From the IMG/VR virus record IMGVR_UViG_3300036846_000743, positions 62,001 through 126,000 of that record: a stretch of DNA of 64,000 nt. One strand, given 5' to 3'. Each line of letters opens with the position of its first letter. The first letter of the stretch is position 1. This document shows, in pieces, positions 54,389 through 64,000 of this stretch. The notes beneath the pieces were generated by a model. The model ran no database searches. It was not told where the DNA came from and was given only the letters and a program-made list of their open reading frames with translations. The position numbers were made by a program, and so were the translations under genes.

Positions 54389-56365
54389 TCAACTGCCGCC
54401 ACGCCAGGTAGCAGCGCCTCCGTGGACCGGCATTTTGAGTCGGTCCACTGATGCATCATGACCATCCAGGTCGTCGTTGTCGACATCCCAGGATCCGTCG
54501 TCAGGATCCCAACCCTTGGTCAGGCCCTGCCGCCCGAAGTGAGTGCGCTCGGCCAGCGCGGGCACGTAGCTCGTACCGGCAACGTCACTGGTAGCGCCCC
54601 GATGCGCCGCCTGCAACGTGGCCTTCTCAAGGCCGGACCCCAGATGCCGGGTCATGAAGTCGGGATCATGCTGGAGGTTGTACATGCCCCGGACCATCAT
54701 GGGTTCGAAGGGCGGCGGCTCGTCATGGACTTCCAGATTGTTCACTCCGAACTCCCTGAGTTCGGGAAGCATCCCCTGGCGGACCTTGGTGCCTATGGTG
54801 TGATGCAGGACCGGACGCTCGAGATACTTGCCCACAGCCGATGGCAGCTCGACCACACGGGACCCTTCCCGGGGACGCCAGTTGTTCTCGACGTGTGAGT
54901 ACGGCACCACGTCATCCTCCACGTGATCACCGAATTCGTCCGTGACCCGAACGTGATCGATCAGGCCGCGGGCCAGCAACTCGACATTGCGCCGGTGGCT
55001 GCTCATGCCCGAGTTACGATAGGCGTCTCCGAATGCCCCGACGAAATACCGGCGGCCCTCGCCAATGCCTTTGTGCCGAACGACTTCGGCAGGGTTGGGT
55101 ATCCCGTCCGAGAGCACGTCGCCAGCCTCGACACTATCGCCGATCTCGACCTTCGGGTCCATACCGGCGGGGACGTAGTGCTGCTCGGATCCGACCATGA
55201 CGTACTTGCCGCCCTGGGGAGCGTCAGTGATCGCCGAGACCTTGCCGTCGAGCTGAGCATGCGTGGCCCCGCCCTTGAAGGTCTTGGGCACCTGAATTAA
55301 CTGGTTGATATGGGCAAACCCAGAGACGGCTTTGTCGGCCCCGGCGACGCCGCCGGTATGCCGGGCCGAAAGCTGGCCCTGGGAGAGCTTCTCCGAAACG
55401 GCCTGCGCAGCAGCCAGGCCCACGTAGTCGCCCAGCGGGGGTAAACCGCCCCGCTCCCGGATGCCGACATCCCGGGCATAGACGCCTCCCTGGGGCGGCC
55501 CGCCAATCATGGGCGATCGGACCAGGATACGACCATGCCCCTGAGCCTGGAGGTCCTTGAGGACCTTGGGCGTCAGGGTCGTATTTCGCTTGTAGGGGCC
55601 GATGGGGCGAGCCAGCAGGGCACCTTCGTTATCGGGATCATCGGTCGCGACTGGCAGGCCGCGCACCGAGGTCGTATCGTCAGGGCCGTCGTGATCGGTC
55701 ACGATCAGACGGTGCACGACCTGGTTGAGCTGCTTGCTCAGGAAGCCAGCGTCCTGGGTGGCAAACTTGGTCGAGACAACGCCCTTGCGAGCACCGAAGG
55801 CACCGGCCCAGTACTCGGCAGGCGAAAGACCATGAGGGTACGAGTTCAGGACAGGGATCGGGATCGGCCGGTCGTGATGATCGACGTACATCAGGTCGGA
55901 GCCCATGAAAGACTTCAGGTTCGTCTTGCTGCCCCGCGCGCCTGAGAGCACCTGGCGGACAAACGGATTGTCAGCCGCCTTGGCCTCGTCGAAGATCGCG
56001 TTCTCCATGTGATCACGGTACTTGTCCACCGCGGCAACGATCGCCTGCTCTTTTTGGTCGTCAGTTGTCCGGGTGTTGGCCTGGATCATCTGGACTTCGC
56101 GGCGAATCTGTTCCTTGATCCGCTCGCCAGTCTTGCTGGGCCGCATGTCTTCCAGAGCGACCGAGAAGCCGCCGGTGGAATATGCTACATCACGACCAAC
56201 GTCAGAAAGCCGCTTGGCAACGTCGCGGTAGATCTCGGGGCGGCGCTCGGCGATGTCCTGGAAAAGTTGCCTGATACCTTTGGCGTCGAGAACGCGATTG
56301 TAGTCTTTGAGTTCAGGCGGTAAACTTTCGTTCACCATCAAATTCCCTAGAGTTGTCCGGAGCAT
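54389..56365 (-). CDS. rpoC: RNA polymerase beta' subunit, C-terminal part
   Basis: SGARG; bridge helix EYWAGAFGARKGVVSTKFATQDAGFLSKQL; trigger loop AAQAVSEKLSQGQLSARHTGG; RRNVELLARGL. Start 56365 (or 56392). Confidence 0.92.
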   Translation of the reverse strand: MLRTTLGNLMVNESLPPELKDYNRVLDAKGIRQLFQDIAERRPEIYRDVAKRLSDVGRDVAYSTGGFSVALEDMRPSKTGERIKEQIRREVQMIQANTRTTDDQKEQAIVAAVDKYRDHMENAIFDEAKAADNPFVRQVLSGARGSKTNLKSFMGSDLMYVDHHDRPIPIPVLNSYPHGLSPAEYWAGAFGARKGVVSTKFATQDAGFLSKQLNQVVHRLIVTDHDGPDDTTSVRGLPVATDDPDNEGALLARPIGPYKRNTTLTPKVLKDLQAQGHGRILVRSPMIGGPPQGGVYARDVGIRERGGLPPLGDYVGLAAAQAVSEKLSQGQLSARHTGGVAGADKAVSGFAHINQLIQVPKTFKGGATHAQLDGKVSAITDAPQGGKYVMVGSEQHYVPAGMDPKVEIGDSVEAGDVLSDGIPNPAEVVRHKGIGEGRRYFVGAFGDAYRNSGMSSHRRNVELLARGLIDHVRVTDEFGDHVEDDVVPYSHVENNWRPREGSRVVELPSAVGKYLERPVLHHTIGTKVRQGMLPELREFGVNNLEVHDEPPPFEPMMVRGMYNLQHDPDFMTRHLGSGLEKATLQAAHRGATSDVAGTSYVPALAERTHFGRQGLTKGWDPDDGSWDVDNDDLDGHDASVDRLKMPVHGGAATWRGGS

Positions 56366-56401
56366 GGCAACGTCACACCCCCGCTTCACCATACGCTTTC
56401 G

Positions 56402-56656
56402 TCAGACTTGCCAGTCGTAGTCCTTGACGCCGTTAGGCTTGATCGTGTCGATCTGGACCCGGTCGAGGCCGAGATTGGCCAGGATGCGGTTGAAGTGCGG
56501 GTCCCTGGCGTGCGCCGCCGTGACATGCGTTCCGTTGGTATCGCCCACCCATTCCACGACCACGGCCAGCGGGGTCCCGTCACCGCTCTTGACGACCACG
56601 CGGGTGGCCGGGATCACCAGCGGATTGCCCAGGCCGTCGAGGATCTCCAGGATCAT
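56402..56656 (-). CDS. Hypothetical protein (84 aa)
   Basis: ATGA-coupled to the upstream gene. Confidence 0.65.
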   Translation of the reverse strand: MILEILDGLGNPLVIPATRVVVKSGDGTPLAVVVEWVGDTNGTHVTAAHARDPHFNRILANLGLDRVQIDTIKPNGVKDYDWQV

Positions 56657-57456
56657 GCATCACCACTTTTGAGCGATCGGGACAGGGCAGCCAGGGCGCC
56701 CGCCTTGCTGCGAACCGTACGTAATTCATCGAGCGTGTACTCATTACCGACATCGAACGACTGGCGGCGATGATCCTCGCCGAGAATTCTGGAGATCCCT
56801 TGAACACCCGAACCCGCTCTGACCGAGGCCGCCTTGGCGCCGCCGCCAATGGGGCCCTGGTCGGGAGTCAGCGGCGGAATTGGGCCAGGACCAGCCCCGC
56901 CACCCGGAGGCGCACCGCCGCCCGGAGGCGCGCCGCCGCCCGGAGGCATACCGCCTGGTCCCGGCATGGTGGTACCACCACCGCCAGGTGCTGCCTGCTC
57001 CGCCTGTGCCTGTTGCTGCATCATCGGATCAGGCGGCGGACCGACCACGATCGATGGCGGCACCTGGACGTTCAGGGCCTCGCAGACCTTCACGAGCAGG
57101 AACTGGATCGTCCAGAGCTTGGTGTCCAGTAATTGCTGCTCGGCCTTCTTGCCGCCACCCTTGCCAGCAGGCCCGCCGGCCATGCCGCCGGCGCCTTGAG
57201 CTGCCTGGGTGATCTGGGCCAGCGTCGCCGGATCGAGCGGTCCTGGAGGCGGAGCTGGTGCTCCACCCATAGCACCGCCCCCGCCGGCCATCGCGGCTGG
57301 ATCCGGCATGGGCGGCGGAGCGCCGCCAGCCATTGCGCCCGGATCAGGGGGCTGCGCGACCTTCTCGAACTCGTTGTTGTCCAGTACGTCGTTGTCGACC
57401 CGCCATCGTGCTACTGCCCGCAGGTGTGGATTGATGAGCGGAAGTGTCGCTGACAT
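56653..57456 (-). CDS. Pro/Gly/Ala-rich hypothetical protein (267 aa)
   Basis: Low-complexity PPGGG repeats; EKVAQ and AKAAS motifs. Confidence 0.65.
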   Translation of the reverse strand: MSATLPLINPHLRAVARWRVDNDVLDNNEFEKVAQPPDPGAMAGGAPPPMPDPAAMAGGGGAMGGAPAPPPGPLDPATLAQITQAAQGAGGMAGGPAGKGGGKKAEQQLLDTKLWTIQFLLVKVCEALNVQVPPSIVVGPPPDPMMQQQAQAEQAAPGGGGTTMPGPGGMPPGGGAPPGGGAPPGGGAGPGPIPPLTPDQGPIGGGAKAASVRAGSGVQGISRILGEDHRRQSFDVGNEYTLDELRTVRSKAGALAALSRSLKSGDA

Positions 57457-57648
57457 GGTTCACCGTCCCTGATGAGTGGGTTCCCGGTCCCTGAGTCGAC
57501 AGCCGGCTTCACGCCGTCATCTTAACGCGAGTCAGCCTTCCCGAGCAACGCAGCGGCTAAAGTTCGCCGCTGTTCCCGTCATATACCAATGCAAGACGCC
57601 TGGTTGTCAGGCATCCCGATCTGTCCATCACGATGAAAGGGTTTTCTG

Positions 57649-57747
57649 ATGGGAACTGTTCTGTTCTGGCTCTTCGTGCTCTTTTGTCTTGCAGCCGCAG
57701 GACGTAGCGCTTGCAGCTGTACCAATCACTATCACTACCGGAGGTGA
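57649..57747 (+). CDS. Possible 32-aa hydrophobic peptide MGTVLFWLFVLFCLAAAGRSACSCTNHYHYRR (antisense to the operon)
   Basis: GAAAGG upstream; one TM/signal-like segment; followed by hairpins and a U-tract on the + strand. Confidence 0.4.
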   Translation: MGTVLFWLFVLFCLAAAGRSACSCTNHYHYRR

Positions 57748-57756
57748 TCGACCCGC

Positions 57757-57821
57757 CGGAAAGCTAACCCACCCTAGCTTTCCGATGGGTCGGAAGACCC
57801 GTCGGACTGTCTTTTCTTTTT
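57757..57821 (+). terminator. Two adjacent hairpins followed by a T-rich tract (intrinsic terminator-like on +)
   Basis: CGGAAAGCTA-8nt-TAGCTTTCCG (57757-57784) overlaps TCCGATGGGTC-GGAA-GACCCGTCGGA (57781-57806); then CTGTCTTTTCTTTTT. Confidence 0.6.
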
Positions 57822-57826
57822 AGCTA

Positions 57827-59815
57827 TCAGCGATCCATAACGATCTCGACGGGCTGATCTGCGCTAATATCACCCCGCCGGTAAGCCGCCAGGGCATCGG
57901 CCTTGGTAGCGAAAGTCCGCGGTCGCTTACCGGACCGTCCGGCCGTGGCCGCGTAGAGCCCGGCGGCGTATTCGCGGCTCGGAAGTTGATGCGCTTTGAA
58001 AGATGCTGCCGCAAGCAGGTTCCGGCTGGGAAGCATCTTCTCATAAGCGTCCCTGACCGCTTCCTTGGTAACCGGGACGTGGTACTGCATGGCGTCGCCA
58101 TCGAAGTCAGCGCCGAAGCCGGTGACGATCATGGGCGACACGTGCAGGGTCTCGCCCTGCTCGAGCCTCGGGCGGAAAGCCATGATCCCGTACCGGTGCA
58201 GGACTGGTGCTCTGTTGATGATCACCGGCCGGGAGTCCATCTCGTGCATCATCTCGGCGCGCGCCGACGGCTTACGCTCCTTGACCGCCCTGACGGCATC
58301 GATACGAGCCATGCCGCGCTGAACTAACCGGCGAACGATAAAAGGCTGGTAGACATCCCAGGCCCGGTTCTCCGGCAGGCCGACCTGATCCATGTCCAGA
58401 TCGGGATTGGGCACTATAGTCGCTCGACCCACCAGGTCCGTGGCGCTGGAGAGCAGCTTGCGCTGGACCATGCCCGTCTTGGGGCTATTCCCGAAAACCT
58501 GCTTGAGCACGCCCCGGACCCCTCGCTCCTGGTTCTTGGGATGAAGCGGATCACCGAGGCCAGTCACAGCCTTCAGGGTCTGGTAAGCAGCCAGCCGCTC
58601 CTCCGAGACGTCGTTGACCTTGGTCTTCATGTCCCGGAGGTTATCACGAGCATCGATCAGTTCTTTGTAAAGATAATTGGCATCAGCCACCATGGGCAGC
58701 TTGGAGCCAGCCATCGTCGAGACCGGCCGGAACATAGGGGGCAGCACAGGGGCTTTATCGAGCATCCAGTCCCTGGGATGCAGCCCGGCTTTCTGGGCAC
58801 CCTTCAGGTAGCCCAGCTTGCGCACGGCCGTATCACGGGCACCCTTACGTCCTGAGCGAATATCAGCTCGGGCCTGGTTGATGGCCTGATCGAGCTTGAT
58901 CCCATCCAGCGCCTTCGAGATCGCTTCGGAGCCCGTCCGGCCATTGAGTTCCTCCTTGCCGGACAGCACGGACAGGAACTTCTTCTCGGTCATGCCCAGC
59001 ATCCGCCGGATCGGTTCTTCCATCGCTGGGTTGGGTAAGGGCTCGGCCAGCTTAATATGCGCCCACCTGTTTCCCCCGTGACCACCGGTCAAGGCTTCGT
59101 CGAACAAGCCTCCTTTCAGGGGCTTCAGGCCCTCTTTCCAGTCGACCGTGTCGCCGTGGGTGATCTCGCGGTCGCCAGATAATTCATCGACATCTTTCCC
59201 TGAAAGAGCCATCGCATTCAGCCTGGTACCTTGGCGGACGACGTTAATTCCGCCGGCCTTGAGCATGTTGATGAACTTGTCATAGACCATGGGCGTCTTG
59301 GGCGTCGGCAGCGGCCGGCCGGACATGAACTGCGCCCAGAATTCGGGATGCTGCTGGCCCCGAACGGCACCAGCATCACGAAGCACTTCGGTAGCTCCAT
59401 GCGAGAGCAGCGCGTTCACGTCCATGAGTGATATTCTCTTGGAGCCGGCTTCGCCGCCACGTGCTGGGGCCCCCTCGGCCGTGTAGCCGCCGGTGCCGCG
59501 GCCCTGGCCCTTGGATTCGCTGGTGTGGTGAAGTTTCATGAACCAGCGGTTGCCCGTAAGTATGCGCGGGATATCGCGCCCGGCGACCGGATCCTTGATC
59601 GTCTCGGCCGATGTCATGCCATGCCGGGCCAGCTCCTGGATGGCCCATTCGTTGTAGTCCCGGCCGTCGAAGTCAGGAACACGATAGGGCCTGCCGGTCT
59701 TCTCGGCAATCTTGCCCAGAGCGGCCTCGATGCTCTGGGCCGGGTTCGTGCGGGTGATCACACCTAAAGGATTCAACAATACTTCATACGGCCGACCTTT
59801 CATATCTTGTGGCAT
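57827..59815 (-). CDS. rpoC: Fused RNA polymerase beta C-terminus + beta' N-terminal (catalytic) part; conserved coding extends upstream to 59857 without a start codon
   Basis: beta: MPQD...VLLNPLGVITRTNPAQ, MKLHH...KGQGR, KRISLMDVNALLSHGA. beta': GGLFD, VLPPMFRP, DLVGRATIVPNPDLDMDQVGLP, NRAPVLHR, GADFDGD at 58094-58114. Confidence 0.93.
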   Translation of the reverse strand: MPQDMKGRPYEVLLNPLGVITRTNPAQSIEAALGKIAEKTGRPYRVPDFDGRDYNEWAIQELARHGMTSAETIKDPVAGRDIPRILTGNRWFMKLHHTSESKGQGRGTGGYTAEGAPARGGEAGSKRISLMDVNALLSHGATEVLRDAGAVRGQQHPEFWAQFMSGRPLPTPKTPMVYDKFINMLKAGGINVVRQGTRLNAMALSGKDVDELSGDREITHGDTVDWKEGLKPLKGGLFDEALTGGHGGNRWAHIKLAEPLPNPAMEEPIRRMLGMTEKKFLSVLSGKEELNGRTGSEAISKALDGIKLDQAINQARADIRSGRKGARDTAVRKLGYLKGAQKAGLHPRDWMLDKAPVLPPMFRPVSTMAGSKLPMVADANYLYKELIDARDNLRDMKTKVNDVSEERLAAYQTLKAVTGLGDPLHPKNQERGVRGVLKQVFGNSPKTGMVQRKLLSSATDLVGRATIVPNPDLDMDQVGLPENRAWDVYQPFIVRRLVQRGMARIDAVRAVKERKPSARAEMMHEMDSRPVIINRAPVLHRYGIMAFRPRLEQGETLHVSPMIVTGFGADFDGDAMQYHVPVTKEAVRDAYEKMLPSRNLLAAASFKAHQLPSREYAAGLYAATAGRSGKRPRTFATKADALAAYRRGDISADQPVEIVMDR

Positions 59816-59858
59816 CTCATGATCAGGAATGATTGCGGAAACTACGCCTTTATCGCCT

Positions 59859-62800
59859 TCAACCGTACCGGCCGCTGTTCAGCGACCAGTACGTTTTGTC
59901 CTCTCTTTTGCAGTAGACGATATGGTTGGGGACTGTGACGCAGTAAACGTCACCCGAATAGTCGACCATCCTTTCTTCGTTCGCCTCGTAGATCCCGATC
60001 CGGCCATGTTTGAACCAAGGACGCAAATGCTTCCGATTGACACGACCCCGCCAATGCGGCTGTTTCTGCCAGTTATCCGTCCGCTCCGTCCGTTTGAGCG
60101 TCACGGCCCAGCCTAGTTTCAAGCAAATGATCTGGATATCGACAGCTAGCTGTTCAGACGAAGAACCGTATTCCCATGCATCGCCTTGATGACCATCGCC
60201 GGCCATGTAAGCGTCAAAGAAAATGCGGAGCTGCCGCGGGCACAACTCCTGAACGTAGTCTGGAATGTACTTGGTATAGCTATCGCCTAACAGCGCCAGA
60301 ACCCCGTAGAGCCATTTGCTGGTAATCTCGAACCGCTGATCGTCGCTATTGTAGGTGAAACGAATCCCTAGCCGAACTAGGCTATCGTAGATCGCTTGCC
60401 AGTGCGGTGAGTTACGGAACTGGGCAATCTTCACCTTGAAGCTACCATTGGCCTTATTGTAGTCGCACCAACCTTCAGCCAAGTAATAGCCCAGAAACTC
60501 GAGCCAGTCGTCCATTCGGACCTGCTCATAATACTGCTCGCGCGATGTGTATTGCGCGTATGGCTCGAACTTGATCCATTCTTGCTCGATGCCAATCCAG
60601 CGGCAGTCTTTCTTGAAATTCCATTCGCCTTTCGACTCGTAAAATGCCTGTGCCGTGATCGGCTGATAGGACTTGCCTGGCCGTGCTACCCAGAGTCGGT
60701 GCTCGGGCGTGACCAGCATGTTGATGTGCTTGGTGTTCAGGTAGTACATCAATCCATCATGACGATACCGATGCAGATGAGTCGGCTGCTGATATTCCAG
60801 CGCATCCGTCTCAGGGTTGAGAGTTGTCAGCTCGTCATCGGTCACAACCTCCGCAACCGGTTTCCAACCCCGACGGGTCAGAAGCCAGGTCGCCGGGTCG
60901 TAGCACATCTTGTCGCCGACTTCCATGGGGTTCAGGCTCTTGACCGAGACCACGATACCCTTGGGCGTCTTCTCGACGTCGGTAACTTCGCCAGGTGCAT
61001 GATGGTTCCAGGTCTCAGAGTGATCGGCCCACGCCGCTTGCCGGCCCCGGGAGAGCGACCCGTGGGTCCGCTCGCGTTCCTTGACGGCCAGGATCAGCGG
61101 ATCGCCGTGATTGACGATCGTGCCCGGCCTGACCACGCCCTCGTCGTCAATGGTATCAAGCATCTTGCGGTCGAATACACCTGGAAAAGTCGCGATGTGG
61201 GCGCTCTTGCCCGGCTTGACCTCGCCGTCGTGCTCGAGCGAGTGCTGATACATGTGCTCCGAGGAGAACCGCTTGGCCATCGCCTCGCTGATGACGATCG
61301 CGTCCTCGAAGTTCAGGCCGCGGAAGGGGATGTAGGCCGTGCGGGCGTTCTGACCCAGGGCCGATACACCGTGTTCGTCGGTGTAGTTGGACCTGGCCAG
61401 CAGGCTGCCGGCAGCGATCCGGTCGCCAGGCTTGACTACCGGAGTCTGGTGAATATAGGTTTTCCGGTTGTAAGGATAGTTCACGTAAAGCTCGTGCTCG
61501 CGGGGCTTGCCGTCGTCGCCCTGGACGGTGATCTTGCCGTCCTCCACCCTGGTGACGATACCGGGAGCGTCACTGTGCATGGCGCCGAAATGCCGGCCAT
61601 AGCGGGACTCGTAACTGTCACCCTGGCTCCCCCTGACGCCGGCCTGCACCAGCGGGGCCTGGGGATCCTTCACCGGCAGGGCCTGGGTGATCATGCGGCC
61701 GGCCATGACCTCACGCTGCCCCTTGACGGTCGACTTCATCGGCACCAGGTTCGAGATCGAGCTGAAGGCATCGTCCATGTTGGGCAGCTCGTACTGGACC
61801 TGGTTCCGCGGCACGTCGCGGGTCTTGCCGCCGGCCAGCGCCGAGACGTAGGGCTTGACCGTCTGTAGCTCGCCCGGAAAGGCAATCACCGAGTCGGTCA
61901 GGTCCTGCGCGCTGCGGTGTTCGAGCCGGCCAGTACGCACGTTGCGAAACGGCGCGTAGAGCCGGCCGTCGGCCCCCTTGAATGTCCCCTGGGCCACACG
62001 GCCGTCGACACCGGCATGAAAGCTCTCCGGGGTGACCAGGGGATCGATCAGGCCGAAGTGCGACGGCTGAACGTTGCGAGCTTCGGCGGGGATTGCATCA
62101 AGCGAAGGAATCCCTCCAGTGCCCAGCCGGCTGACCCGGGCCTGCTGGTCGAAGATCATGGCCGGGTTAATTCCCTCGGTGGGCTGGCCCAGGCCGCTGG
62201 ACTGGATAGCGGCGTTGATATTCCGGGTCAGTAACTCGGCCGGGATGTGCTTGAGGCTCCCGGTCATGGACGCTTTCCAGAGGACCTTGCCCAGAAGCAT
62301 GCGGTCCTTGCCGACCCGCTCGGATAACAGATCTTCGGGACCCATGGCGTACATGTAGGCCAGGTGATCACGGTCATCGGGTTCTGCTTCTTGTTTGTTT
62401 ATCGCAGCCAGTTTCCTGGTGGTATCCAGCATCTGATCCAGCGAGACCTTGTCGTACGGCTTACCGAGGGTCCGCCTGGTGACCTCTGGGTCGAGCTTCA
62501 TGGCCTCGAACGCTTCGCGGACTTCCTGCTCCTGGGTCTTGGTCGGATCAGGTTTGCGAACCAACCGGCTATGCAGCTTACCGATGACCGATGGATCATC
62601 CTTGAGCATGTTGGGCTGGTAGAGATCACCCCAGGCTTCGCGAAGCTGCTTGTCGCTGGCCCCCATGGCATGGAGCAAGGACGTCAAGGGCATCTTGGAC
62701 TGACCGACTTTGAGGCGGAACACGCCGGTCTCGGGCTCCATGAAGATCCGGTGCGCGGCACCCTGGCCGGGCATGACGTTCACATGGGCTTCGAGTTCGC

Positions 62801-63329
62801 CGTTGGCCTGGCGGCGAGTAAAGACGCCGGGCCGGAGCCTGAGCTGGTGAGCCAGCGTATATTCGGACCCATTCTGGATAAAAGTCCCGTGATCGGTCAG
62901 GTACGGGATCGTAGCCACGGTGGATCGTTTCTGATCGATGACCGCGCCGGTCGCGTTATCACGCAGCGTCCAGGTGCCCCGGAGCCGGGCCCCCAGACTG
63001 CGGCCTCCCAGGATGGCCTTCTTCCAGTCGGCCTTGCCGTACCGCTGCGCGCCTTCATAGCCGACGTCGTCAAGGGTCAGGGTGTGTCGCTGGTTCGAGA
63101 CCGGCGGGATCTTGCCAGCTGCCTCCTTGACGCGATCGAAGATCCGGCTCCGGATCGCGGCCGCATCGCCAAAGGCACGAAGGCCGGCCGGAGCGTGTGC
63201 CGGCAAGGCGGGTGATCGCTCAACACCCTGTTCCTTGTGCGTGCCGTCGTTGATCCTGCCGTCGCCGTCACCGTCTCGCGGGACGCTGGACAGCGATCCC
63301 AGGGCCGACTCTGCCAGAACGCTAGGCAC
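59859..63329 (-). CDS. rpoB: RNA polymerase beta subunit, N-terminal/major part, intein-containing
   Basis: GTFIQNGSEY...LRPGVF, SRLGTGG...ARNVQPSHFGLIDPLVTPE, MAGRMITQA, LGQNARTAYIPFRGLNFEDAIVISE, VGDKM. GTG 63329 with AAGGAGG. Confidence 0.93.
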   Translation of the reverse strand: MPSVLAESALGSLSSVPRDGDGDGRINDGTHKEQGVERSPALPAHAPAGLRAFGDAAAIRSRIFDRVKEAAGKIPPVSNQRHTLTLDDVGYEGAQRYGKADWKKAILGGRSLGARLRGTWTLRDNATGAVIDQKRSTVATIPYLTDHGTFIQNGSEYTLAHQLRLRPGVFTRRQANGELEAHVNVMPGQGAAHRIFMEPETGVFRLKVGQSKMPLTSLLHAMGASDKQLREAWGDLYQPNMLKDDPSVIGKLHSRLVRKPDPTKTQEQEVREAFEAMKLDPEVTRRTLGKPYDKVSLDQMLDTTRKLAAINKQEAEPDDRDHLAYMYAMGPEDLLSERVGKDRMLLGKVLWKASMTGSLKHIPAELLTRNINAAIQSSGLGQPTEGINPAMIFDQQARVSRLGTGGIPSLDAIPAEARNVQPSHFGLIDPLVTPESFHAGVDGRVAQGTFKGADGRLYAPFRNVRTGRLEHRSAQDLTDSVIAFPGELQTVKPYVSALAGGKTRDVPRNQVQYELPNMDDAFSSISNLVPMKSTVKGQREVMAGRMITQALPVKDPQAPLVQAGVRGSQGDSYESRYGRHFGAMHSDAPGIVTRVEDGKITVQGDDGKPREHELYVNYPYNRKTYIHQTPVVKPGDRIAAGSLLARSNYTDEHGVSALGQNARTAYIPFRGLNFEDAIVISEAMAKRFSSEHMYQHSLEHDGEVKPGKSAHIATFPGVFDRKMLDTIDDEGVVRPGTIVNHGDPLILAVKERERTHGSLSRGRQAAWADHSETWNHHAPGEVTDVEKTPKGIVVSVKSLNPMEVGDKMCYDPATWLLTRRGWKPVAEVVTDDELTTLNPETDALEYQQPTHLHRYRHDGLMYYLNTKHINMLVTPEHRLWVARPGKSYQPITAQAFYESKGEWNFKKDCRWIGIEQEWIKFEPYAQYTSREQYYEQVRMDDWLEFLGYYLAEGWCDYNKANGSFKVKIAQFRNSPHWQAIYDSLVRLGIRFTYNSDDQRFEITSKWLYGVLALLGDSYTKYIPDYVQELCPRQLRIFFDAYMAGDGHQGDAWEYGSSSEQLAVDIQIICLKLGWAVTLKRTERTDNWQKQPHWRGRVNRKHLRPWFKHGRIGIYEANEERMVDYSGDVYCVTVPNHIVYCKREDKTYWSLNSGRYG
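59877..60905 (-). mobile_element. Intein with LAGLIDADG homing endonuclease (343 aa) at GDKM|S of beta
   Basis: Block A CYDPATWLLTRRGW; block B LVTPEHRLWV; LAGLIDADG FLGYYLAEG and FFDAYMAGDG; block F/G VYCVTVPNH...WSLN followed by +1 Ser; lower GC. Confidence 0.95.
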
Positions 63330-63339
63330 AGGGCCCTCC

Positions 63340-64000
63340 TTACTTGGGGTGCGGCTGTACCAGTTGCTGTCCAGCGACGCGGCCCAGCGATCCAGCCAGG
63401 CTGGGTAATTGCGGCGGGGACGGCTCTGCCGGCTTCTCGGGCTTCGCCGGCTTGCCATCGGTCGGCGTCATGAGCCGGTTCCAGACGGCCATCTGATTGG
63501 CCTTGATCCGGTTCAGGAATTGGTCGGCCGCCTGGCCGACACTGGCGTGCTTCTCTTTCTTCGCCGGCTCCTCGTCTGGTTCCTTCCTGGCCCCGAACGC
63601 ACGGTGCCAGATCGACGGCTTCGGCCGCATGATCGGTGTCGGCATCGGGATCGCCATGATCGGGCTCGGGGCCTGCTCGGCAATCTGGGCCTGCCGCCGC
63701 TTCACTGCCTCCTCGACGGCCTTGTCCTCGGCCGTTGATCTGGCCCAGTGATAACCACCCAGGCCGGCACCCAGCATGAGGCCGCCGCCCAGCGTCAGGG
63801 CACCACCCATAAGCGGACCGTACCAGCCTTCTGCCTGCTTCTCGTAGAGACTGGCCAGCACATCGAGCGAGCTGGGCTTCGGATCTGCCGAAGCCAGCTT
63901 GCGCCGGCCGGCCAGCGCACTCTCGTAGCCCTTGCGCGCCTCTTCCAGCTCACTCTCCTGCTCGGCCGTCCGGGTCTTGTCGAGCAGATAGTCAGTCAGC
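63340..64000 (-). CDS. Glycine-zipper hypothetical protein, 5'-truncated by window edge
   Basis: The track ORF 63340..63861 stays open upstream to base 64000 (LTDYLLDKTRTAEQ...); MGGALTLGGGLMLGAGLGGY; EKQAE and EKHAS motifs. Confidence 0.7.
   Translation of the reverse strand, partial: LTDYLLDKTRTAEQESELEEARKGYESALAGRRKLASADPKPSSLDVLASLYEKQAEGWYGPLMGGALTLGGGLMLGAGLGGYHWARSTAEDKAVEEAVKRRQAQIAEQAPSPIMAIPMPTPIMRPKPSIWHRAFGARKEPDEEPAKKEKHASVGQAADQFLNRIKANQMAVWNRLMTPTDGKPAKPEKPAEPSPPQLPSLAGSLGRVAGQQLVQPHPK

Follow-up and report, generated by a model that had tools for sequence, protein, structure and literature searches.

Efficient programmed translational bypassing is known mainly from one phage system, T4 gene 60 and its topoisomerase homologues, and from one yeast mitochondrial lineage, that of Magnusiomyces capitatus with its "byp" elements. 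In gene 60, the ribosome hops over 50 nt (20 nt in the shortest homologue) between matched Gly codons, and the interruption is physically tied to the homing endonuclease mobA. Besides, synthetic "stop-hops" with shifts of +5 and +6 work in E. coli (Weiss et al. 1987, as cited in PMC5009743), but they are inefficient (about 1%). Short natural hops with matched codons across a stop have been predicted since 1987, while the 2016 recoding review (PMC5009743) states that natural in-frame stop-hops are not known, and our literature searches found no description of the case presented here. We analyzed the essential RNA polymerase (RNAP) beta gene of a jumbo phage, which is interrupted just after an intein by a 7-nt gap beginning with a stop codon. 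Related phages keep this arrangement in 16 distinct versions, so ribosomes most likely hop over the gap, which would be a new natural family of translational bypassing.

Structure of the interrupted polymerase gene

The analyzed DNA, called the window below, is a stretch of 64,000 nt from the IMG/VR record IMGVR_UViG_3300036846_000743. The features of the locus, all on the minus strand, are as follows.

60906..63458 (-), N-extein, the N-terminal part of the phage RNAP beta-like subunit, ending ...MEVGDKM
59877..60905 (-), 343-aa intein with a LAGLIDADG homing endonuclease (Cys1 ... Asn343), inserted in GDKM|SGRYG
59864..59893 (-), conserved 13-bp RNA hairpin, with the 5' strand at 59893-59881 (last intein codons), the loop GAAC at 59880-59877 and the 3' strand at 59876-59864 (Ser-Gly-Arg-Tyr codons plus G1 of the proposed take-off codon)
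59862..59864 (-), proposed take-off codon GGT (Gly of SGRYG)
59859..59861 (-), stop codon TGA directly after it
59855..59861 (-), 7-nt coding gap TGA-A-GGC, whose last 3 nt (59857-59855, GGC) are the proposed landing codon
57827..59854 (-), resumed coding DKGVVS..., the beta C-terminal part fused to the beta' N-terminal part (to the GADFDGD Mg site and beyond), with its stop at 57829-57827
54389..56392 (-), separate gene for the beta' C-terminal part, i.e. the rest of the polymerase

The preliminary description of this break in the beta reading frame proved correct. The first ORF (63458..59859) ends ...WSLN|SGRYG, and its codons are AAC (59879-77), AGC (59876-74), GGC (59873-71), CGG (59870-68), TAC (59867-65), GGT (59864-62) and TGA (59861-59), followed by A (59858), GGC (59857-55) and GAT (59854-52). 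The continuation GDKGVVSAIIPDHEMP... lies in the +1 frame, which is open only from 59878 and has no ATG, GTG or TTG before the ATG at 59815. Simple read-through of UGA would meet TAA two codons later. Six relatives without the break read ...SGRYGDKGV... or ...CGRYGDKGI... at this place, so the window carries exactly 7 extra nt. Uninterrupted genes are found in the relatives (labeled L with a number) L004, L005, L007 and L009 without an intein and in L006 with a different intein, and they are single ORFs of 1496, 1846 and 2212 aa.

For the flanking parts we ran Pfam searches. In the N-extein, which is 77-82% identical to the continuous genes of L004 and L005, residues 632-852 match RNA_pol_Rpb2_6 on profile positions 5-228. 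The resumed part matches Rpb2_6 profile positions 232-361 and then Rpb1_1 and Rpb1_2, so the profile positions of the two pieces abut (228 and 232). The separate beta' gene matches Rpb1_4 and Rpb1_5. The two pieces were not joined across the stop for any search. It turned out that the gap has the property of a non-coding insert, being absent from uninterrupted homologues, and that joining the flanks restores the conserved protein.

The intein has the features expected of a LAGLIDADG intein in a conserved host motif. Cys1, TPEH, two LAGLIDADG-like motifs, the terminal Asn and Ser+1 (...SLN|S) can be read in the sequence, LAGLIDADG_3 is matched in 9 of 11 family members, and PDB matches are to PI-PkoII and VMA inteins. 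Hint_2 and Intein_splicing are only weak matches, and the penultimate residue is not His, both in the window and across the family.

Conservation of the junction in related phages

To figure out whether the break is an error, we searched for the window's own allele and for its relatives. The exact allele has no independent replicate. DNA searches with and without the 7 nt found only the window's own contig among viral contigs and nothing among metagenome contigs, and the exact protein of the first ORF is not on record elsewhere, so the support comes from relatives. In cultured-phage records, blastn of the junction region found nothing, while tblastn found only distant polymerases (Arash, Vibrio D181 and others). 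A pattern search of genome contigs also found nothing, which leaves no host or prophage lead.

In contrast, 16 distinct versions of this junction were found in independent metagenomes and assemblers, with 43-88% extein identity. All of them (16 of 16) carry the same family of ~340-aa LAGLIDADG inteins at GDK(M/L/F)|C...N|SGRYG. Several recur identically in independent assemblies, namely L013 (ENA) and L014 (Logan), L015 and L016 (two runs), L051 (JGI) and L052 (Logan), L053 and L054, and L022, L024, L026 and L041. The GGY take-off codon is kept in 16 of 16 variants and is followed at once by a stop in 16 of 16, with TGA, TAA and TAG all in use. A GGN codon lies directly before GAY-AAR (Asp-Lys) in 14 of 16, and it is GGY in 13. 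The two exceptions, AGC in L017 and GAT in L018, lack a cognate landing codon but are one base away from GGN, and GGA in L015 is not read by tRNA-Gly(GCC). The variants share ancestry, so these counts are not fully independent, although at least 12 distinct gap sequences and 5 lengths show repeated turnover.

The resumed frame is also conserved. The 13 codons between the landing codon and the first Met are under purifying selection (pS 0.76, pN 0.22, pN/pS 0.29), and D, K and G are invariant although each uses 2-3 codons. In 11 of 16 variants there is no ATG, GTG or TTG in the resumed frame before Asp-Lys, and the downstream Met is ATA in L037.

The preliminary description had named three outcomes that would overturn a hop, and none of them was obtained. 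Against an error in reads or assembly, the same junctions recur in independent assemblies. Against random decay in relatives, the site is conserved, and both flanking ORFs are intact over 1100-1500 and 675-2021 codons. Against independent initiation at 59815, there are the ATA in L037, the invariant DKG upstream of it and the absence of a promoter-like site. An artefact, a pseudogene, or a truly split beta whose C-part starts at 59815 and works without DKGVVS is therefore very unlikely and effectively refuted, even though only one assembly contains the window's exact proteins and gene callers do start the downstream gene at that ATG. Gene callers systematically split this polymerase gene, and dozens of ~660-aa "MP..." proteins in public databases are products of this mis-call. 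A crude scan of the window for other long open stretches before a start codon found no second frame break of this kind.

The skipped stretch is 5, 6, 7, 8 or 9 nt, covering all three frame relations, so no single frameshift direction fits, while one GGY-to-GGN hop fits all and restores the SGRYG-DKGV sequence of uninterrupted relatives. Conventional frameshifting or read-through would mean a +1 shift at GGU-UGA-A in the window, giving SGRYG-EG-DKG, and +2 or -1 shifts, or stop read-through where the gap is in frame, in relatives, with 2-3 extra residues in the active-site loop. A stop codon in the A site also stimulates prfB-type +1 frameshifting, and the resumed frame is open for 7-8 codons upstream in the 7- and 8-nt variants. 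However, homologous sites would need three different mechanisms, GGU-to-GUU re-pairing is poor, and there is no Shine-Dalgarno sequence 3 nt upstream. All uninterrupted relatives and the distant phages Arash and Vibrio D181 have no extra residues in GR(Y/H)G(D/N)KG, and the conserved GGN directly before Asp-Lys has no explanation in this model, which we consider unlikely.

Hairpin-driven sliding without re-pairing in the P site is likewise improbable. In this case the mRNA would slip and a new Gly-tRNA would decode the landing GGN in the A site and give SGRYG-G-DKG with one extra Gly. The AGC, GAT and GGA variants show that exact re-pairing is not always available. However, the consensus has a single Gly, the frame would be poorly defined without re-pairing, and landing codons are GGY in 13 of 16, matching the GGY take-off, whereas the next Gly codon (in DKG) is GGA in 9 of 16.

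A conserved hairpin next to the proposed take-off codon

The preliminary description proposed a weak hairpin (CGGCCG-GUA-CGGUUG) covering the take-off codon, but this is not the favoured fold. The same CGGCCG bases belong to the 3' arm of a much stronger 13-bp hairpin (-23.1 kcal/mol, z = -6.2), which ends on the first base of the take-off codon. In 15 distinct sequences, 11 core pairs are 100% paired, 3 of them with double changes. The covariation score is 0.123 against 0.056 in shuffles (reached by 0 of 500), and partner-slid controls give 11-52% pairing. RNAalifold independently predicts the same helix with 13 pairs at -23.3 kcal/mol and 5 pairs with compensatory changes, including Ser AGC<->TCC matched by C<->G in the preceding codon. 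The hairpin is present in 16 of 16 gap alleles, which fold at -20.3 to -23.8 kcal/mol, and absent from 9 uninterrupted alleles, which fold at -6.3 to -12.5 kcal/mol with no such stem.

A strong GC-rich hairpin directly followed by an A/U-rich stretch and flanked by GG...GG repeats resembles terminator-like geometry. The gap might be lost at the RNA level, either by an unknown processing step directed by the hairpin or by RNA polymerase skipping 5-9 template bases between the two GG repeats; RNA data were not examined. This seems unlikely, since such micro-excision or transcriptional hopping has no precedent, and the model does not require the gap to begin with an in-frame stop codon, as 16 of 16 do with all three stops. 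Moreover, no Rfam family matches and no terminator-like T-run follows.

Probable programmed bypassing linked to a mobile intein

The best explanation is a programmed short-range translational bypass (a stop-hop) linked to a mobile intein, in which we have good but not complete confidence. In this model, the ribosome translates the beta N-part, the whole intein and Ser-Gly-Arg-Tyr-Gly, so that GGU sits in the P site and UGA, which is slow to decode, in the A site. Peptidyl-tRNA-Gly would then let go of GGU, the mRNA would slide by 7 nt, the same tRNA would re-pair with GGC and decoding would resume at GAU-AAA, yielding one polypeptide ...SGRYG-DKGVVS.... The intein would then splice itself out and leave a normal GDKM-SGRYGDKGVVS active-site loop. 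The hairpin is inferred to refold behind the ribosome, at the mRNA exit or Shine-Dalgarno-helix cavity, pulling the mRNA forward and blocking backward movement, as proposed for the 5' stem-loop of T4 gene 60. It lies 5' of the take-off codon and is melted while GGU is in the P site, so this action is a model.

Our analysis establishes the anatomy and its conservation, the covariation of the hairpin, purifying selection on the resumed frame and the strict co-occurrence with the intein, whereas the hop itself, the role of the hairpin and the efficiency are inferences. There is no protein, ribosome-profiling or reporter evidence, and the efficiency is unknown. Since synthetic stop-hops are inefficient, high efficiency would have to come from the hairpin and/or the nascent peptide, which is untested. 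The upstream peptide K(R/E)xxK(T/S)YWSxNSGRYG is conserved, but intein function constrains it anyway, and a signal in the exit tunnel was not assayed. No tRNA genes occur in the window, so no phage-encoded tRNA-Gly or suppressor tRNA can be invoked from it; the rest of the 226-kb contig was not scanned. The comparative data thus support the earlier interpretation of a peptidyl-tRNA-Gly hop from GGU across UGA-A onto GGC, although its hairpin was wrong and the link between the element and the intein had gone unnoticed.

The 5' arm of the hairpin is encoded by the intein's own last codons. A more speculative and rather unlikely reading is that the cassette works as an "addiction" or retention device. 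Precise loss of the intein would leave a gap that ribosomes can no longer hop and would kill the essential polymerase, so the intein and gap would travel and persist as one selfish unit, a recoding signal recruited by a mobile element to enforce its own retention. Alternatively, or in addition, the gap might shield the allele from endonuclease cleavage, as the gene 60 gap does for MobA. We also compared inteins with exteins. A global alignment of the first 265 aa was confounded by additional inteins and local alignments give only a weak correlation (rho 0.28), which does not tell spread by homing from spread mainly by descent.

The family links recoding to intein biology for the first time. 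Its 16 natural variants, with different stops, gap lengths and landing codons and a simple covarying hairpin, form a compact system, probably easy to handle at the bench, for asking how mRNA refolding behind the ribosome drives forward sliding.

Comparison with known recoding systems

The locus shares with T4 gene 60 the matched Gly take-off and landing codons, the stop directly after take-off, conserved mRNA pairing next to the take-off codon, and an interruption in a highly conserved, essential gene tied to a homing-endonuclease element. In both, the hop (inferred here) restores the uninterrupted protein sequence exactly. However, the gap is 5-9 nt, leaving no room for a take-off stem-loop 3' of the codon or for an internal Shine-Dalgarno sequence before landing, and the hairpin lies wholly 5'. 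The host gene is RNAP beta instead of the topoisomerase II large subunit, and the mobile element is an in-frame intein instead of a free-standing mobA. With no sequence homology seen, no homologous ~50-nt cassette, no UUCG-type take-off stem-loop and no Rfam match, the locus is not a member of the gene 60/mobA cassette by homology, but in our model it works like one.

The geometry is the same as in synthetic stop-hops in E. coli (Weiss, Dunn, Atkins and Gesteland 1987; O'Connor et al. 1989, as reviewed in PMC5009743), with matched codons flanking a stop. The relatives L022 and L053 (GGY-UGA-GGU) and L033 (GGC-UAGGU) are exactly of this form, while the window is a +7 version. The synthetic hops were artificial, whereas this one is natural, conserved, located in an essential gene and provided with a dedicated hairpin.

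The byp elements are also short inserts bypassed by translation, and their landing does not always need a perfect match (two of three bases), as in L017 and L018. They are, however, 27-55 nt long, occur at 81 sites, use an unassigned sense codon in the A site and depend on relaxed mitochondrial decoding rather than a local hairpin. In the prfB (RF2) +1 frameshift, a stop codon in the A site makes the P-site tRNA re-pair further downstream, as proposed here, but prfB needs an overlapping +1 codon (CUU-U) and a Shine-Dalgarno sequence 3 nt upstream, both of which are absent at this locus, and the variable shifts of 5-9 nt are incompatible with it.

Organization of the interrupted RNAP gene

To describe the interrupted polymerase gene, we searched the ORFs on the minus strand and compared them with Pfam. 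A 1199-codon ORF encodes the N-terminal two thirds of a multisubunit-RNAP beta-like subunit, a 343-aa LAGLIDADG intein and five C-extein codons in this order, and the coding sequence continues in another frame behind a stop codon. The features are as follows.

63458..59859, minus strand: 1199-codon ORF.
60905 (Cys1) to 59877 (end of Asn343), minus strand: 343-aa LAGLIDADG intein, inserted in the catalytic motif after GDKM and followed by Ser-Gly-Arg-Tyr-Gly.
59864-59862, minus strand: GGT, the last Gly codon of SGRYG (proposed take-off codon).
59861-59859, minus strand: TGA stop codon.
59858, minus strand: A.
59857-59855, minus strand: GGC (proposed landing codon), followed by GAT AAA.
To 57827, minus strand: the continuation DKGVVSAIIPDHEMP..., 675 codons in the +1 frame, which covers the rest of beta fused to the N-terminal half of beta', including GADFDGD.

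The +1 frame opens only 8 codons before Asp and has no ATG, GTG or TTG before 59815, and read-through of the TGA would hit TAA two codons later. The preliminary description had placed the break, the stop codon and the frame of the continuation in this way, and it turned out to be accurate. The first ~100 residues of the ORF (63458-63150) are Arg/Ser/Pro-rich and low in complexity, and the JGI annotation gives a product of 1156 aa, which is shorter than the 1199-aa ORF, so the true start codon may be further downstream. The sequence comes from a 226-kb metagenomic contig (JGI 3300036846), which also encodes a tail sheath and a baseplate wedge, so it is a myovirus-type jumbo phage.

The architecture of the polymerase (54389-59857, minus strand) is unusual. 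The beta C-terminal part is fused in one ORF to the beta' N-terminal half (through GADFDGD), followed by two small ORFs (56653-57456, 267 aa, no Pfam hit; 56402-56656, 84 aa) and by a separate gene for the beta' C-terminal part at 54389-56392. Relatives share this layout.

Comparison with uninterrupted relatives

Six relatives from viral contigs (L004 to L009; 53-84% identical downstream) read straight through this site. L004, L005, L007 and L009 have no intein here and read GDK(M/L)SGRYGDKGV, while L006 has a different intein with Cys+1, which ends in GN and is followed by CGRYGDKGI. L008, the most divergent one, has no intein here either and reads SDKLSDRFGAKGV. The genes of L004, L005 and L006 are single ORFs of 1496, 1846 and 2212 aa, respectively. 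The distant cultured phages Arash and Vibrio D181 read GDK(V/I)TGLHGNKGVVS. Relative to all of these, the window has exactly 7 additional bases between the Gly and Asp codons. In Vibrio phage D181 (L002, 4511-5128), a free-standing homing-endonuclease gene splits the polymerase gene at a different place, which is another route by which mobile endonucleases invade this gene.

Junction variants in independent assemblies

An assembly error, or decay of the site in relatives, had been named in advance as outcomes that would speak against recoding. We searched for further alleles. The downstream ORF as gene callers see it (662 aa starting at MPQDMK) was searched against a large protein collection, which returned many proteins of ~652-672 aa from long contigs. 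Of 25 fetched proteins, 17 start at the same "MP". Gene callers systematically annotate the downstream half in public protein collections as a ~660-aa protein beginning at the conserved Met of (E/Q)MP, which drops the essential DKGVVS segment. We then fetched the DNA for several of these proteins and also ran degenerate DNA patterns, which would have matched a gap-less allele as well, on viral and metagenome contigs. Together this gave 16 distinct junction variants.

Several variants recur base-for-base in independent runs or assemblers, namely L013 (ENA) and L014 (Logan), L015 and L016, L051 (JGI) and L052 (Logan), L053 and L054, and L022, L024, L026 and L041. The window's own allele is seen in one assembly only, while L012, which is 87% identical and comes from another sample, has the identical junction with synonymous differences downstream. 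The downstream protein is 43-88% identical among the variants and the intein 44-99%, so the arrangement is old. It is neither an artefact nor a pseudogene.

Conserved anatomy of the junction

Whether the take-off, stop and landing codons are conserved among homologous genes had been proposed as a test of the hop, and we examined this in the 16 variants, which share ancestry. All 16 carry the same intein family, with GDK(M/L/F) before it, C...Y(W/L)SxN as its first and last residues, and SGRYG after it. All 16 have GGY for the last Gly, and all 16 have a stop as the very next codon, with all three stop codons in use. Most variants (14 of 16) have a GGN codon directly before GAY-AAR, and 13 of these are GGY. 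The two exceptions, AGC (L017) and GAT (L018), are one base away from GGN. The distance from the take-off codon to the landing codon varies between 5 and 9 nt.

Distance from take-off to landing codon in the 16 junction variants
5 nt: L033, where the landing GGT overlaps TAG
6 nt: L022 and L053, which read GGY-TGA-GGT
7 nt: the window, L012 and L018
8 nt: L013, L015, L036, L037, L049 and L051
9 nt: L017, L039, L040 and L050

All three frame relations therefore occur at one homologous site, so no single frameshift direction can serve all of them, and the in-frame variants are blocked by the stop. A hop of peptidyl-tRNA-Gly from GGY to the next GGN explains every variant, although two variants lack a cognate landing codon and one uses GGA, and in every case it yields the SGRYG-DKG sequence of the uninterrupted genes. 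The comparative data thus support the preliminary interpretation of the site as such a hop.

Selection on the resumed frame

Independent initiation at 59815, with an enzyme that works without the DKGVVS segment, had also been put forward as an alternative that would count against the hop. In 11 of 16 variants, no start codon exists in the resumed frame upstream of Asp-Lys, and the "Met" used by gene callers is ATA in L037. Yet the 13 codons from Asp to that Met have pS 0.76 against pN 0.22, and D, K and G are invariant while each uses 2-3 codons. Besides, the Pfam Rpb2_6 profile positions of the two pieces abut at 228 and 232. These results indicate that the resumed frame is translated, though translation itself was not measured here.

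A covarying hairpin ending on the proposed take-off codon

Synonymous sites are frozen just upstream of the gap, where GGC-CGG-TAC is nearly invariant although our pattern allowed any Gly or Arg codon, while they vary freely downstream. The explanation is a stem with the following parts.

59893-59881, minus strand: 5' strand, which encodes the last intein residues (T/S)-Y-W-S-x.
59880-59877, minus strand: loop, GAAC.
59876-59864, minus strand: 3' strand, the Ser-Gly-Arg-Tyr codons plus G1 of the take-off codon.

The hairpin of the window folds at -23.1 kcal/mol with z = -6.2. On the alignment of the 16 sequences, all 165 cells of the 11 core pairs are standard pairs, and three of those pairs show changes on both sides. 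The covariation score is 0.123 against 0.056 in shuffles, 0 of 500 shuffles reach it, and sliding the pairing partners drops pairing to 11-52%. RNAalifold finds the same helix on its own, extended to 13 pairs, with 5 compensatory pairs. For instance, TGG>CTG is matched by CGG>AGG in L051, ACG>TCA is matched by TAC>TAT in L036, and the Ser codon switch AGC<->TCC is matched by C<->G in the preceding codon. All 16 gap alleles fold at -20.3 to -23.8 kcal/mol, while nine uninterrupted alleles, including L006, fold at -6.3 to -12.5 with no such stem. No Rfam family matches the site, and it does not look like a promoter or a terminator. The small hairpin suggested in the preliminary description uses bases that belong to this larger stem.

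A purine-rich, Shine-Dalgarno-like stretch (GAGAGGA, GGAGG, GGGAGGA) lies about 34 nt upstream of the take-off codon (about 59905-59898, minus strand; columns 8-15 of the 16-sequence alignment). It stays purine-rich in all 16 variants, even though the encoded residues vary (RED, RGG, RRD, RGD, REE). It may simply reflect the codon composition of Arg, Glu, Gly and Asp, or it could be a further signal.

Proposed mechanism

The anatomy, its conservation and the covariation of the hairpin come directly from the sequences, while the course of the hop is inferred from them, and so are its efficiency, the exact junction peptide and the role of the hairpin. In the most likely mechanism, termination is slow when GGU is in the P site and a stop is in the A site. 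The 5' arm of the hairpin would already have left the ribosome, while the 3' arm would still be threaded through the E-site and exit path. Refolding of the stem would pull the mRNA towards its 5' end, which would favour codon:anticodon dissociation and displace the mRNA until the next Gly codon can pair. The observed displacements leave 4-8 unpaired bases between the base of the helix and the landing codon, which is about the spacing tolerated between a Shine-Dalgarno helix and a P-site codon, though this similarity is our inference and not a result. The same kind of logic, with an A-site stop, matched Gly codons and mRNA pairing on the exit side as a forward driver, is proposed for T4 gene 60 (bioRxiv 10.1101/2022.08.31.505936; 10.1101/2024.12.09.627546). 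After the hop, ordinary protein splicing would remove the intein.

Relationship between the gap and the intein

A profile search with this intein family in viral contigs returned only gap-bearing loci, and the DNA patterns that would also match a gap-less allele found none with this intein. No gap was seen without the intein, and the intein-less alleles L023, L027, L034 and L035 are continuous. Because half of the hairpin is encoded inside the intein, the two features are physically interlocked. Why the gap exists is not shown. It might protect the allele from endonuclease cleavage, as argued for the gene 60 gap and MobA, or it might be a retention device that makes intein loss lethal. Intein and extein divergences correlate only weakly (rho 0.28), so horizontal homing of the cassette is plausible but unresolved.

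The polymerase genes of this phage clade also carry many further inteins at other sites. L005 (2494-8031) has one at about aa 416-764, and L006 (1414-8049) has two. These other-site inteins of L005 and L006 lie within continuous ORFs, while the rest were not checked for gaps. The beta' genes of L015 (11016-13361) and L049 (4492-4948) hit Hom_end_hint and LAGLIDADG_3, and the downstream ORFs of L017 and L022 are 2021 and 1017 aa.

Comparison with known systems

Full-text searches of the literature found no description of bypassing in an RNAP gene or next to an intein. A review from 2016 states that natural in-frame stop-hops are not known and that short matched-codon bypasses had long been presumed to exist (PMC5009743). 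In the inferred mechanism, the present case is programmed translational bypassing. By homology, it is not a member of the gene 60/mobA cassette family, since the host gene is different, the gap is 5-9 nt rather than 50, there is no 3' take-off stem-loop or internal Shine-Dalgarno sequence, and the mobile element is an in-frame intein. Its geometry is that of the synthetic +5 and +6 "stop-hops" of 1987.
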